Below are positions 16,499 through 63,517 of a stretch of 64,000 bases of DNA, piece by piece. The number at the start of each line of letters is the position of its first letter. Positions within the stretch are counted from its first letter, which is position 1. The stretch lies in sequence record NC_021529.2; one strand, written 5' to 3'. The notes beneath the pieces are model-generated. The model saw only the letters and a program-made list of their open reading frames with translations, did not search any database and was not told the origin of the DNA. Made by a program: the position numbers and the translations under genes.

Positions 16499-17314
16499 AT
16501 GACTATCACTAAAGCAGAAATGACAGCAATCGCAAACGACATCATGAGCGGCAACAATCTTCTAAAGCGCGATCTTAAAGCTGAAGGTTGGTTCTTCGAA
16601 TTCGGTTCAATGGCTGCTCTAGGCGACTGTCATTACGGCAAGAAAGTTCTACGTCTTTCTGACAAGTACTTGAACGCACGTACTAAAGCTGAGCAAATCA
16701 ACACTATCACGCATGAAATGGCACACGCTATTGCATACACTGATTACAGCGAACGTGGTCACGGTGCAATCTGGAAACGTGTTCATCGTCAACTAGGTGG
16801 TACTGCTGAGCGTACTTCTCGCGTATCAAATCTAGAAGCTGTTGACAAGAAATACGTAGTTTTCTTTGAAAACGACAAAGGCGAACTAGAAGTTATCCAC
16901 AAAATGGATCGTCTGACTGCTAAATTCCGCGGTTCTCGTATTACTAGTCTTTACGTTCCAAGTCGTAAAGAAGAGACTCAAGGCAAACTACGTTGTGTTT
17001 CTTCAGTTACTTTCAACGCAATGAAAGCAAATCTTGAAGAATCTCGCGCTGAAGCGAAAACAGTTGAAGTTAAGCCAGTTGTTAAACCAACTCAAAAGAC
17101 TGAAACTAAGAAAGTTGAAAAGAAAGTATCAGCGCGTGGTCAAGCTGCTCGTGATGCAATCGCTAAAATCGTAACAACTGAGATTTACAAAGATTCGACT
17201 GTTACATTTTACAAGCGTCGTCCAACTGATAGCATTTTCTTCATCAAGATTGAAACTGCGACTGACACAATCGAACAGCGTCTAGACGTGTTCAAAAAGA
17301 AACACAGCTTGTAA
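16499..17314 (+). CDS. SprT-like zinc metalloprotease domain protein
   Basis: LGDCHY, TITHEMAHA, HGAIWK...LGG. Confidence 0.85.
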   Translation: MTITKAEMTAIANDIMSGNNLLKRDLKAEGWFFEFGSMAALGDCHYGKKVLRLSDKYLNARTKAEQINTITHEMAHAIAYTDYSERGHGAIWKRVHRQLGGTAERTSRVSNLEAVDKKYVVFFENDKGELEVIHKMDRLTAKFRGSRITSLYVPSRKEETQGKLRCVSSVTFNAMKANLEESRAEAKTVEVKPVVKPTQKTETKKVEKKVSARGQAARDAIAKIVTTEIYKDSTVTFYKRRPTDSIFFIKIETATDTIEQRLDVFKKKHSL

Positions 17315-17326
17315 TTCTCTCAATCA

Positions 17327-17346
17327 GCCCCGAAAGGGGCTTTTTT
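17327..17346 (+). terminator. Intrinsic terminator
   Basis: GCCCC-GAAA-GGGGC plus T6. Confidence 0.85.
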
Positions 17347-17353
17347 AGGTTGA

Positions 17354-17427
17354 GCGGAAAATTCCGCATCATCTTAGTAGTATTAGTAGTTTTAGTGATA
17401 TTAGAGATATTAGTAAAATTAGTTTAA
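17354..17427. repeat. Hairpin plus six phased 9-bp TTAG repeats, copy 1
   Basis: GCGGAA-AA-TTCCGC; TTAG at 17374, 17383, 17392, 17401, 17410, 17419. Confidence 0.9.
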
Positions 17428-17469
17428 CAAACGCCTTGACAATCGTATAATATACGTCGAGGTGATGAA

Positions 17470-17709
17470 ATGATAACGATATACACAATTCCTAACTGCG
17501 ACGGCTGTCGCCACGCTATTTCCCTCTGTAAGTTCAAAAACGTCCCGTACACTGTAATCGAGTTGCAGTCTCAATCAGACATCGATAAATTGCATACACG
17601 CCTTGGCGGTGTTCGCAATATACGAGTGCCATTAGCAATGCATGGTGATGACTACATTGGTCATTTACCAGAATTGAAGAAATGGATCGATGCTAATCTG
17701 TATAAATAA
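17470..17709 (+). CDS. nrdC: Glutaredoxin
   Basis: YTIPNCDGC active site, VP motif, YIG. Confidence 0.85.
   Translation: MITIYTIPNCDGCRHAISLCKFKNVPYTVIELQSQSDIDKLHTRLGGVRNIRVPLAMHGDDYIGHLPELKKWIDANLYK
17701..17708 (+). promoter_or_regulatory. T4-type late promoter for gp24
   Basis: Exact TATAAATA. Confidence 0.8.
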
Positions 17710-30922: not shown

Positions 30923-31426
30923 TTATCTCTGATTGCAATTGTCAAAATGCCAACGATTCATAGCAGGCTTGCCGCCAGATTTACCGCAATGTGGACACGA
31001 TATAATATCTTTTGCAATCCCTTTAATCTTCGATGGGCCTAGTTTGCGACCTCGTTGAGTTTCAGATCTCTTGCGATTTGATTCTTCGGTCATTACTTGT
31101 TTGGCTCTTGCTGCACGAATTTTCGCTCTTGTTTCGTCGCTGCATCGATCAGAACCACCGTGTCCGCCTGTTCGTAGGTTGTAACACATTTCATCATTAA
31201 CAAGAATTTCATCAACTATACGCTCTTCAGCTTCGTTGCATACATTTTCATCGTCGCATATGAAGAGTATTTCTTTGATGAATTTATCTTTACCATACTT
31301 TTTGACGGCACGCTTTATTAATATACCTGAGCCAAGATATGAGTCATGTATATTTTCAGTTTTATGCTTGCCGATGTAGAATTTATTGTTTATTGTGTTC
31401 GTAATTTTATATATTATGTATTTCAT
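30923..31426 (-). mobile_element. Free-standing GIY-YIG homing endonuclease (Seg-like) with NUMOD-like repeats
   Basis: IIYKITN...FYIGKH, YLGSG, YNL, SDETRAKI and TEESNRKRS repeats, C-terminal CPHC; antisense insertion before gene 43. Confidence 0.9.
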
Positions 31427-54400: not shown

Positions 54401-55795
54401 TTGATTATTGAATACGTAATGTCAGCGACTGGACATGCTCGTCTTAGTACTGCATATAAGCTTAGAGATAAAGTTGATATAACTTATCTCCGAGACATTT
54501 TAAACGCTGCACAAAACTTAGACGGCGTTCACAAGATCAGTATGCTTTATAACGCATACACTGAGAAGAAAATTGGTCGAGAACTGCGTGAGATTTTTGG
54601 TGATTCAGTTTACAAGATTCACGTTGACTCTGGCGGTCTACAGATGATCACCCTCGGACTCGACAACACACCAGAATTACGTGCTGGTGTTTACAAGAAT
54701 CAAGCAGAATCTGGTGACATTGGTATGTGTTTCGATGAAATCCCAATTCACAACACGTCGAAAGGTGGTGGTGCTGCACGATTAAACGCGAACGATAAAG
54801 TATTCATCAGCGACATGGCATATGAATATGGTGTTCGTTCTGGCAAGAACATCAAAGATCAGATAGAAGCATATCTTGCAGATGAAAGTCAGTGCAAACC
54901 GTATGTAATCTTTCATGGTAACACTGAAGAAGACTACATGAATTACTGTGATGGTATGATGTCTCAGCTTAAAGGGCTTGAGCATCACATTGCTGGCTGT
55001 GCGGTTTCTGGTGCTGCGATTGGGTATGATTCTCGTGAAACAATCGACATGATGAGCGTTGTTCGTAAACTGAACATCCCAGAACACATCAAAAAGTCTG
55101 TTCACATGCTTGGGTTTGGTTCTGTCAAGCGTCTACTACCGTCTATCGCTCTTATACGCAGCGGTTACTTCGGTGACGACTTTCATATCAGCTACGACTC
55201 TTCGACTCACACGGGCTGTTTGACGAATCGTGAGTACACGGATAAGCTTGGTCGTCGAATTAAGATTGAGGGACGCCCGCAGAAGAAGAACAAAGATGTT
55301 CAAGACGCATTTTCTATGATGCTGAATGCTCGTAACCCAGGCAGTGCGGTTGATGAATCGAAAGACTCTGAATCAACAGAGCTTCTTGACAACATGTTGT
55401 CTGAAGTATGGGGTCGATTCTCACATGTAATTCCGCGTTCTGAATCTGAATTCAAAGATTTTGCAACTAAAATGTGGTTTAAGAAGCTGAATCGAGAATC
55501 GTTATCAGAAGAAGATCAAGTGTTTGAAGTTGCATGTAATCTGTGTATCATTCTTTCACAAATCCTCAACTTTCAAGCGATTGTTTCTGAAGCATTCGAC
55601 TTGGACACTGATGGTAAAGAACGTGACGGGTTCGTCAAATGGTCGTCTAAACGTCGAATGTCAGTGCTTGATGACATCATCACGCATGATTCTCCAGAAG
55701 ACTTTGAGAACTGGTACAAGAATAACAGCAAACAATTGCCGTCTATTCGTATTCGACGCGGTACAACTGCTGAATACCCAGATTTTAAATCATAA
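54401..55795 (+). CDS. dpdA: DpdA-like (TGT-fold) DNA guanine transglycosylase
   Basis: VDSGGLQM, MCFDEIP, HMLGFG, SYDSST match TGT catalytic positions; no C-terminal CxCxxC zinc motif. Confidence 0.8.
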   Translation: MIIEYVMSATGHARLSTAYKLRDKVDITYLRDILNAAQNLDGVHKISMLYNAYTEKKIGRELREIFGDSVYKIHVDSGGLQMITLGLDNTPELRAGVYKNQAESGDIGMCFDEIPIHNTSKGGGAARLNANDKVFISDMAYEYGVRSGKNIKDQIEAYLADESQCKPYVIFHGNTEEDYMNYCDGMMSQLKGLEHHIAGCAVSGAAIGYDSRETIDMMSVVRKLNIPEHIKKSVHMLGFGSVKRLLPSIALIRSGYFGDDFHISYDSSTHTGCLTNREYTDKLGRRIKIEGRPQKKNKDVQDAFSMMLNARNPGSAVDESKDSESTELLDNMLSEVWGRFSHVIPRSESEFKDFATKMWFKKLNRESLSEEDQVFEVACNLCIILSQILNFQAIVSEAFDLDTDGKERDGFVKWSSKRRMSVLDDIITHDSPEDFENWYKNNSKQLPSIRIRRGTTAEYPDFKS

Positions 55796-61662: not shown

Positions 61663-61738
61663 GGCGGAAAAATTCCGTCTCATCTTAGTAGTATTAGTAG
61701 TTTTAGTGAAGTTAGAGATATTAGAAGTATTAGGAGAT
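61663..61738. repeat. Hairpin plus six phased 9-bp TTAG repeats, copy 2
   Basis: GGCGGAA-AAA-TTCCGTC; TTAG at 61685, 61694, 61703, 61712, 61721, 61730. Confidence 0.9.
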
Positions 61739-61821
61739 TGAAAATAACTTGAAAAAGTTGTTGACAGTCTCCTTTTTGATCATACTATACAGTTATCGAA
61801 ACAAACTATTGAGTGAAGATT

Positions 61822-63154: not shown

Positions 63155-63517
63155 ATGTCAAATTTCAAAGCAAATCTAGTAGGTCGCGGCACAATCGAAG
63201 TCAATGGTAAAAAATACCAAGGTACGAGCGTGACTGTGAAGAACGGCAAAGTCATCGTTGATGGTCGTCTGCAAGAAGATGTGTCTGATTGTCAAACTGT
63301 GACTGTTAACATCGAAGGCAGTGCAACGCTTGTACAAAACGAAAACGGCAATGTTACTATTGGCGGTGAAGTGAAAGGCGATGTTAAGACAACTAATGGC
63401 GATATTCATTGCTTGAACGTTCATGGTAATGTTAAGACAACCAACGGTGATATCGATTGTTACGATGTTGCTGGTGATGTTGAAACTGTTAATGGAGATA
63501 TTAGTCGAAAATGGTAA
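63155..63517 (+). CDS. Beta-repeat protein (DUF4097-like)
   Basis: Repeated G(D/N)VKTTNGDI units. Confidence 0.7.
   Translation: MSNFKANLVGRGTIEVNGKKYQGTSVTVKNGKVIVDGRLQEDVSDCQTVTVNIEGSATLVQNENGNVTIGGEVKGDVKTTNGDIHCLNVHGNVKTTNGDIDCYDVAGDVETVNGDISRKW

Follow-up and report, generated by a model that had tools for sequence, protein, structure and literature searches.

A conserved hairpin and phased TTAG array at six syntenic sites in Vibrio phage nt-1 and its relatives: a candidate origin-like element

The element and its two copies in the window

The DNA analysed here is the last 64 kb of the 247.5-kb genome of Vibrio phage nt-1, a T4-related myovirus (Straboviridae, Mylasvirus); this whole stretch of 64,000 nucleotides, corresponding to positions 183512-247511 of record NC_021529.2, is called the window throughout, and is numbered from its first letter. 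Its segment 16800-18200 is 100% identical to 200311-201711 of that record. It holds two copies of a non-coding element of a single design, namely a stem-loop, followed by an invariant TCATC, followed by five to six exactly phased 9-bp TTAG units. In the copy that spans 17354-17427, the hairpin and TCATC precede six TTAGNNNNN units, and the flanking genes are open reading frame (ORF) 327, encoding a SprT-like protein (PF10263), and ORF328, encoding a glutaredoxin annotated as nrdH in KVP40. An initial annotation of this DNA had described here a hairpin, ATCATC and six 9-bp units, devoid of C on the top strand and located between a terminator and a promoter. The sequence agrees with this description: the absence of C can be read directly from the six 9-mers, and scans found a terminator-like site at 17326-17341 and a promoter-like site at 17424-17451. 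The former, which is the only terminator-like site in 17150-17550, closes the SprT-like gene just 5' of the element. The features of the two loci are as follows:

17326-17347, + strand: intrinsic-terminator-like hairpin AGCCCCGAAAGGGGCT (17326-17341) and T run, from the terminator scan
17354-17367, + strand: stem-loop GCGGA(A)-loop-(T)TCCGC, GCGGAAAATTCCGC, predicted to fold as RNA and as DNA
17368-17373, + strand: ATCATC, of which 17369-17373 are the invariant TCATC linker
17374-17427, + strand: array of six 9-mers, TTAGTAGTA, TTAGTAGTT, TTAGTGATA, TTAGAGATA, TTAGTAAAA and TTAGTTTAA, C-free on the top strand
17424-17451, + strand: sigma-70-like promoter TTAACA-16-TATAAT (11/12 matches), for the glutaredoxin gene (nrdH) starting at 17470
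61663-61679, + strand: stem-loop GGCGGAA-AAA-TTCCGTC of the other copy, predicted to fold with 7 pairs including one G.U
61680-61684, + strand: TCATC linker, invariant in the alignment
61685-61738, + strand: array of six phased 9-bp TTAG units, read from the sequence
61761-61788, + strand: sigma-70-like promoter TTGACA-16-TACTAT upstream of ORF404, from the promoter scan

The same architecture had been said to recur at 61663-61738, at the junction of ORF403 and ORF404; the hairpin, the array and a downstream promoter are there, but the terminator scan upstream of this copy returned no terminator-like site. In the window, the 22-mer TTAGTAGTATTAGTAGTTTTAG matched twice as against no match in 100 shuffles, four TTAG at 9-bp spacing matched six times as against none in the shuffles, and both arrays were called by Tandem Repeats Finder with a period of 9. 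A chance occurrence is ruled out by these counts. At the glutaredoxin gene, a perfect TTGACA at 17436 sits just 4 nt from the perfect TATAAT (17436-17451) and therefore cannot be the -35 hexamer; the usable one, TTAACA (17424), overlaps the sixth repeat.

Six copies at the same gene junctions in nt-1 and its relatives

The remainder of the nt-1 record, beyond the window, was inspected for further copies. The whole genome contains exactly six, two of which (copies 5 and 6) are those of the window:

Copy 1, about 51.3 kb, + strand: ORF125/ORF126 junction
Copy 2, about 104.1 kb, - strand: gp3/gp1 junction
Copy 3, about 130.5 kb, + strand: gp12/wac junction
Copy 4, about 157.7 kb, - strand: gp35/uvsY junction
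Copy 5, about 200.9 kb (window 17354), + strand: ORF327/ORF328 junction
Copy 6, about 245.2 kb (window 61663), + strand: ORF403/ORF404 junction

Three TTAG at 9-bp spacing occur at these six loci only in the whole nt-1 genome, in which TTAG spacings of 5-8 and 10-14 bp gave 0-1 matches. In all six copies the element has the orientation of its flanking genes. A blastn search with a 131-bp region of the element as query matched 51 Vibrio phage records, all of them KVP40-like and most of them at six places. KVP40, VH7D and D480, whose genomes are syntenic with each other and with nt-1, likewise have six copies apiece, located at identical gene junctions, D480 standing for the most divergent group among the blastn matches (81% identity to copy 5). 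Two further copies were found in marine metagenome sequences (L027 and L029), and these were the only true environmental copies found. The set used below thus comprises 26 copies, six each from nt-1, KVP40, VH7D and D480 plus the two from the marine metagenome. The initial annotation had proposed such a search of the whole genome and of relatives, and had named in advance a lack of conservation in related phages as telling against its proposal; the search gave six copies in nt-1, and the element is conserved in KVP40-like phages.

Among the matches listed from viral and bacterial collections, 9-bp TTAG arrays were mostly perfect tandem or coding repeats, and none of these listed matches had the hairpin-TCATC anatomy, a result that is uninformative, as the search pattern itself imposed TTAG. 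In five contigs of bacterial metagenome-assembled genomes (L160, L214, L218, L222 and L264), 9-bp arrays occur as inverted pairs around a short centre, of the form (N5CTAA)n ... (TTAGN5)n, apparently in intergenic DNA. These bacteria are unrelated, including Alistipes, Riflebacteria and Saccharibacteria, and their likeness to the phage element consists only of the TTAG imposed by the search.

Sequence constraint on the array and on the hairpin

The 26 copies aligned without gaps over 81 columns. All five TCATC columns (23-27) were invariant in 26/26 copies, as was TTAG in 130/130 units (repeats 1-5 of the 26 copies), a set in which C accounted for just 6 of 1170 top-strand bases (0.5%). The unit consensus is TTAGTRRTA, with a preference at all nine positions and a purine at position 6 without exception, and every copy keeps the exact 9-bp phase over its five to six units. 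Between genomes, identity reached 85% in the hairpin and 86% in the repeats as against 67-69% in the 60-nt flanks; in comparisons with D480, the core reached 84-88% and the flanks 58-61%.

The stem GCGGAA/TTCCGY is maintained in 26/26 copies. In three of them (KVP40 copy 2, VH7D copies 2 and 6) it takes the form GCCCAA/TTGGGC, a double compensatory change of GG/CC to CC/GG at two adjacent pairs. The outer pair is G.U plus an extra G-C pair in 12 copies and G-C in ten, and the stem can be extended by an upstream GA that pairs with the TC of TCATC (column pair 5-23 in 25/26 copies, 4-24 in 20/26). Because a G.U on the top strand is a C.A on the bottom strand, these variants mildly favour a structure formed by the top strand. 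RNA folding of the top strand yields the hairpin and an array able to self-pair through G.U, while the array's bottom-strand RNA, which lacks G, is fully unpaired in the prediction; in DNA folding, the top-strand hairpin has a slightly higher stability than that of the bottom strand. A search of Rfam 15 gave no family match, with three matches at chance level only (E 2-9, bit scores far below gathering). The hairpin was also considered as an intrinsic terminator and rejected: AUCAUCUUAG follows it instead of a U run, and the scan reports a separate upstream terminator for copy 5 and none at copy 6.

Copies within one genome (paralogs) are barely less alike than copies at the same junction in different genomes (orthologs), with similarities of 0.84 and 0.87, respectively. 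Some variants are common to copies of a single genome, such as GGGG in copies 2, 3 and 4 of nt-1 and the CCC stem in copies 2 and 6 of VH7D. It follows that selection, gene conversion or the two together keep all copies at a single consensus.

GCGAAGC, a very stable DNA mini-hairpin, accompanies four of the six nt-1 copies at 15-35 nt 5' of the hairpin (copies 1-4; for example L004:31520-31526 and, on the - strand, L004:5220), as against 0.035 expected. In the other genomes its loop varies (GCGCAGC, GCGTCAGC, GCGTTAGC) and its GC/GC closing pairs are kept. At copy 1, GCGAAGC forms the C-terminal K-S-E-A codons of the upstream gene.

A coding role is contradicted by start codons, frame and codon usage

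Small ORFs are annotated over one nt-1 copy, ORF204 (L004:5096-5236, - strand; record 104096-104236), and over several D480 copies (VPHD480_0031, 0096, 0175/0176, 0302, 0404 and 0430), and the frame TTA-GNN-NNN is open across the array. The element might accordingly be taken for a small gene whose product would be a hydrophobic peptide, ...AEKFRIILVVLVVL..., like those annotated for ORF204 and the tiny D480 coding sequences. We consider this reading refuted. The open stretch before the array contains no ATG, GTG or TTG in 12/26 copies and ranges from 21 to 123 nt in length, and the ATG of nt-1 copy 3 falls in another frame in KVP40 and is replaced by ATT in VH7D. Leucine would be encoded by TTA in 130/130 cases as against 14% of Leu codons genome-wide (P about 1e-110), and 0/104 four-fold codons have a pyrimidine third base as against 68% expected (P about 1e-52). 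With neither start nor frame conserved and both codon tests failed, the earlier statement that no gene feature explains the element stands, and ORF204 and the element-spanning D480 coding sequences are probably spurious calls.

Genomic setting, duplex stability and spacing

Sigma-70-like promoters lie directly downstream of five of the six nt-1 copies, copy 1 being the exception. The array abuts or overlaps the -35 hexamer in copies 4 and 5 and lies 15-30 bp upstream of it in copies 2, 3 and 6. The full order of terminator-like stem-loop, element and promoter is seen at copies 2, 3, 4 and 5, while copy 6 has the promoter only and copy 1 has neither. A place after a terminator and before a promoter is the least transcribed part of a gene junction, and would suit a role at the DNA level.

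Duplex stability was calculated from nearest-neighbour energies in 54-bp windows over the whole nt-1 genome. The arrays are among its least stable stretches: copy 5 is the genome minimum and, to four decimals, no window is less stable than copy 3; copies 1 and 6 fall in the least stable 0.14% (copy 6, 0.13%), copy 4 in the least stable 0.5% and copy 2 in the least stable 1.3%. An AT-rich tract predicted to unwind easily, as in T4 oriF/oriG, is found at all six arrays. The six sites are 26-54 kb apart on the circular nt-1 map, and up to 60.5 kb apart in D480. By minimum gap, maximum gap and sum of squares, this spacing is more even than that of random points on a circle, with P values of 0.003-0.008 for nt-1, KVP40 and VH7D and up to 0.014 for D480, the four syntenic genomes not being independent of each other.

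Copy 1 differs from the others in its surroundings. The nt-1 copy (L003:1805-1868) adjoins the hyperplastic region at 51-56 kb, and the gene downstream takes both its Shine-Dalgarno sequence and its start codon from the final repeats. Its orthologs are located at L025:5845-5925 in KVP40, L018:398-478 in VH7D and L035:9032-9112 in D480. In KVP40, VH7D and D480 a lipoprotein-type signal peptide opens the gene that follows, and nt-1 has a different gene there, which places a replacement junction exactly at the end of the array. A bypass or read-through fusion was considered at copies 1 and 6, where the upstream stop is in frame, but was rejected, the gene downstream of copy 1 having its own lipoprotein-type signal peptide in these three phages.

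Two further features of the window were recorded. Near the record end, at 63380-63481, the annotated ORF407 region contains a tandem repeat with a 48-bp unit (2.1 copies, 74% matches), and the homing-endonuclease gene segD (30923-31426, - strand) is inserted, in opposite orientation, between the DNA polymerase gene gp43 and the regA-ORF347 block.

A candidate origin-like unwinding and loading site

Judged from its sequence, the element is a conserved, strand-specific, non-coding cis site: a tetranucleotide that never varies and recurs exactly every 9 nt, a hairpin that is polar and has undergone compensatory change, and a fixed copy number in fixed synteny together show a functional cis element, apparently read at least partly in single-stranded form. 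The initial annotation had read it as an iteron-type replication origin or a binding or loading site for a phage protein. This picture needs amending, in that the covariation of the stem and the strand asymmetry point to a single-stranded component, RNA or single-stranded DNA, which it had not considered. The other part of the proposal is borne out as far as a conserved cis element with the anatomy of a binding array is concerned, and an origin or loading function is consistent with the low duplex stability, the even spacing, the promoters at five of six copies and the position of copy 4, which immediately precedes uvsY, the gene at which oriF is annotated in T4. The constraint and conservation of the sequence, the covarying stem with its 12 G.T-compatible top-strand variants, the accompanying GCGAAGC and the precedent of T4, with oriE and its several dispersed origins, also count in favour of such a function. 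(In the related Aeromonas phage phiAS5 there is no intergenic space upstream of uvsY.) The terminator-promoter position, the extreme ease of melting and the even spacing are best fitted by a genome-wide role at the DNA level, and our first-ranked, still tentative, reading is therefore that of a candidate origin-like unwinding and protein-loading site.

In such a site, the array would offer an oligomeric protein, of the phage or of the host, an iteron-type track to bind and would be, at the same time, the easiest place of the genome to melt, its opening being aided by the negative supercoiling behind the adjacent early promoter. The opened top strand would fold the hairpin, which might serve as a polarity mark and nucleate the loading of replication or recombination proteins, so that six sites, placed evenly round a circularly permuted genome, could seed replication. 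Protein binding, DNA unwinding and replication start at the element are what we infer. A more specific version, to which we give slightly less credence, holds that the six are polar loading sites serving as the genome's origins, with each 9-nt unit taken up by one subunit of a machine that binds single strands as a hexamer or a filament, for example a replicative helicase or its loader.

Several points weigh against an origin-like function. AT-rich DNA upstream of promoters is expected to be unstable whatever its function, and a period of 9 bp does not keep phase with the DNA helix. The covariation of the stem is real but thin, with one or two independent events only, and the test of even spacing is weakened by having been made post hoc and against a uniform null rather than against the available intergenic gaps. 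Copy 1, kept in four genomes, has no promoter, and its array runs straight into a start codon. A comparison with T4 oriF found no similarity in sequence or layout; the unwinding element of T4 oriF and oriG lies downstream of a MotA-dependent promoter, whereas the phage array lies upstream of a sigma-70-like one. No copy lies at the position of T4 oriE (gene 5/repEA), the nearest being copy 2 at about 8.5 kb from gp5 (112.7-113.8 kb). The element may be an origin.

Still more speculatively, the invariant G of each TTAG could be a preferred target of the phage DpdA2 7-deazaguanine transglycosylase. The window carries a 7-deazaguanine DNA-modification module consisting of ORF390 (DpdA2; 54401-55795) and neighbouring preQ0-pathway genes. 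According to published measurements, nt-1 DNA contains only about 348 modified G per million nucleotides. By our calculation, this amounts to about 170 modified G per genome, while the six arrays, with some 10 G each, offer about 60 in total. DpdA2 is reported also to modify E. coli plasmids, which presumably lack the element. On these figures the array cannot be the sole DpdA2 target, and the passages searched in two papers on the modification gave no target motif for the enzyme.

Alternative explanations

At the duplex level, the element could instead be a promoter-upstream operator, whose phased TTAGTRRTA units would be bound cooperatively by a phage or host protein that activates, represses or insulates six early or middle promoters, the regulon comprising nrdH-gp24-gp55, ORF404 towards rIIA, uvsY, gp1, wac and ORF126. 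The preference at all nine unit positions is that of a specific protein site, the arrays of copies 2-6 lie at the -35 or within 15-30 bp upstream of it, and ParG and omega bind contiguous short direct repeats upstream of promoters. The AsiA anti-sigma factor of nt-1 is clear (PF09010, E 5e-47), and ORF161, the 243-amino-acid ORF immediately upstream of asiA (L003:26031-27065 for the two), had no Pfam match and no MotA domain. With no MotA domain beside asiA, a partner activator for the AsiA-remodelled polymerase is not evident in these phages, and an unrecognised activator system is conceivable. An operator is nonetheless unlikely in our estimation: copy 1 is conserved in four genomes without a promoter, the array stands anywhere between 0 and about 30 bp from the -35, a duplex palindrome that the same protein must still read in the other five copies would not be expected to undergo compensatory stem changes, and the even spacing round the genome is left unexplained. 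We give the same low weight to a site acting in read-through or polycistronic transcripts, with the hairpin as a protective 3' end and the C-free UUAG array as a track for an RNA-binding protein (RegA-like, Hfq or S1) or as an RNase E ladder, which would uncouple upstream from downstream messages as a post-transcriptional insulator. The sense orientation of every copy to its flanking genes speaks for it, as do the 12 copies in which an outer-pair G.U would be a C.A mismatch on the other strand, and at copy 1 the last repeats provide the translation signals named above. Copies 1 and 6, with no terminator seen between the upstream stop and the element, should be transcribed. Unit positions 7-9 plus 1-2 moreover read R-N-W-U-U, which is the cleavage consensus of RNase E. 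In addition, nt-1 encodes regA, and RB69 RegA selects AAUAAUAAUAA-type RNAs (PMC3014915). What this leaves unaccounted for is that most copies are placed where transcription is lowest, between an intrinsic terminator that they closely follow and the next promoter, and that RNase E requires neither an exact 9-nt phase nor a 100% invariant TTAG; the top-strand array can also self-fold through G.U, so that single-strandedness is not guaranteed, and the element matched no Rfam family.

A PeSL-type recombination cassette or selfish dispersed repeat, kept uniform by gene conversion and serving as a crossover point for module shuffling with no dedicated biochemical function, seems to us quite improbable. 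Paralogs are about as alike (0.84) as orthologs (0.87), the variants shared within genomes (GGGG, CCC stem) indicate conversion between copies, copy 1 borders the 51-56 kb hyperplastic region with a different gene fused to it in nt-1 than in the others, and PeSLs have been described in nt-1 (PMC4122927). However, the six copies are fixed and perfectly syntenic in four genomes although their flanks are only 58-76% identical, five of them lie between conserved core genes without rearrangement, TTAG in 130/130 units together with a purine-only position 6 exceeds what homogenisation alone would give, and the hairpin differs from the PeSL stem consensus. More improbable by far is a Rho-utilisation site, in which the bottom-strand RNA would load the Rho hexamer and stop antisense transcription against the genes. 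That RNA is G-free, has a C every 9 nt and no predicted pairing, and six 9-nt units make 54 nt, about as much RNA as a Rho hexamer wraps; yet Rho requires neither an invariant tetranucleotide nor exact phase, the C of CTAA mostly follows A and not a pyrimidine, the G.U variants in the stem speak for the top strand, and no source of antisense transcripts is evident at copies 1, 5 and 6, inside long same-strand gene blocks. The remaining probability is reserved for other functions.

How T4-type phages choose their replication start sites is still unsettled, there being no common motif and the role of the oriE iterons being undefined (PMC3016281). Here, a single element, strand-specific and sharply defined, is shared by a whole phage group at six syntenic positions with even spacing, which makes the origin question in T4-related phages directly testable. 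If the six were origins or loader sites, they would provide the first consensus origin for a T4-related phage group, in contrast with T4, and a consensus open to mutation, pull-down and mapping with nt-1 in Vibrio natriegens, a laboratory host that is safe and grows fast. If they were instead an operator array or an RNA processing signal, they would define a six-member regulon, or a kind of insulator that we have not seen described for these phages.

Comparison with known systems

The element relates to known kinds, namely iteron or unwinding elements and PeSL-type intergenic cassettes, and is undescribed as far as the accessible literature shows, although an earlier mention in the KVP40 genome paper (PMC180978) is possible. 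The main text of the nt-1 genome paper contains no TTAG array and no mention of the element hairpin (PMC4122927), and the words 'intergenic', 'repeat' and 'hairpin' are absent from a recent comparative study of these phages (PMC12028318). PeSL cassettes of nt-1, which prefer hyperplastic regions, consist of a terminator-like stem-loop with the stem consensus A3-4G3-loop-C3T3-4, an AT-rich stretch and a sigma-70-like early promoter (PMC4122927). The element resembles them as an intergenic composite of stem-loop, AT-rich DNA and promoter, seen at copies 2-5, and in the signs of recombination between copies (Arbiol 2010; Comeau 2014, PMC4122927). It differs from them in its GCGGAA/TTCCGC stem, its phased array and its six fixed copies, five of which lie between core genes.

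Arrays bound by ribbon-helix-helix proteins, such as the 4-bp boxes with 4-bp spacers of ParG and the heptads of omega, have periods of 7-8 bp and are bound cooperatively. They share with the element contiguous short repeats upstream of promoters, each an invariant tetramer plus a short spacer, and differ from it in having no covarying hairpin and no strand bias. The T4 gene 32 translational operator, in which structured RNA gives way to unstructured, repeated A/U-rich units as far as the start codon, is similar in that a 5' structure precedes a short-repeat array on which a protein could spread cooperatively, and copy 1 likewise reaches a start codon; unlike it, five of the six copies are upstream of a promoter and not in a leader, there is no pseudoknot, and no copy is at gene 32. 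The DnaA-trio also presents 5'-TAG-3'/5'-TAA-3' repeats, in a 3-nt register beside a GC-rich segment, on one strand of an unwinding region, whereas the element has a super-period of 9 nt. T4-type phages are not known to use DnaA, and a DnaA-trio system was rejected, as no conserved DnaA box (TTWTNCACA, 1 mismatch allowed) was found at a fixed position from 120 nt upstream to about 200 nt downstream of TCATC in the 26 copies. A T4-primase GTT/GCT site in repeat 2 was likewise set aside as weak evidence, being present in 23/26 copies and missing from three D480 copies.

The closest comparison is with the replication origins of T4, which has at least five active dispersed origins without a common motif, one of them, oriE, with direct repeats of 12 nt set at regular distances, their role undefined, and a dependence on an early promoter (PMC3016281). 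The element and oriE have in common evenly spaced short direct repeats beside an early-type promoter in a T4-related genome, with a binding protein suspected (PMC3016281); in nt-1, sigma-70-like sequences follow five of the six copies and are lacking at copy 1. In T4, however, the repeats are of 12 nt and at one locus near gene 5/repEA, while the element has 9-bp units, a 5' hairpin and six loci. With oriF and oriG it shares an AT-rich, easily melted, promoter-linked tract with a polarity tied to transcription, although no TGCTT (MotA) box was seen in the six nt-1 copies. Overall, the origins of T4 share no motif, whereas the six sites of the element share one sequence.

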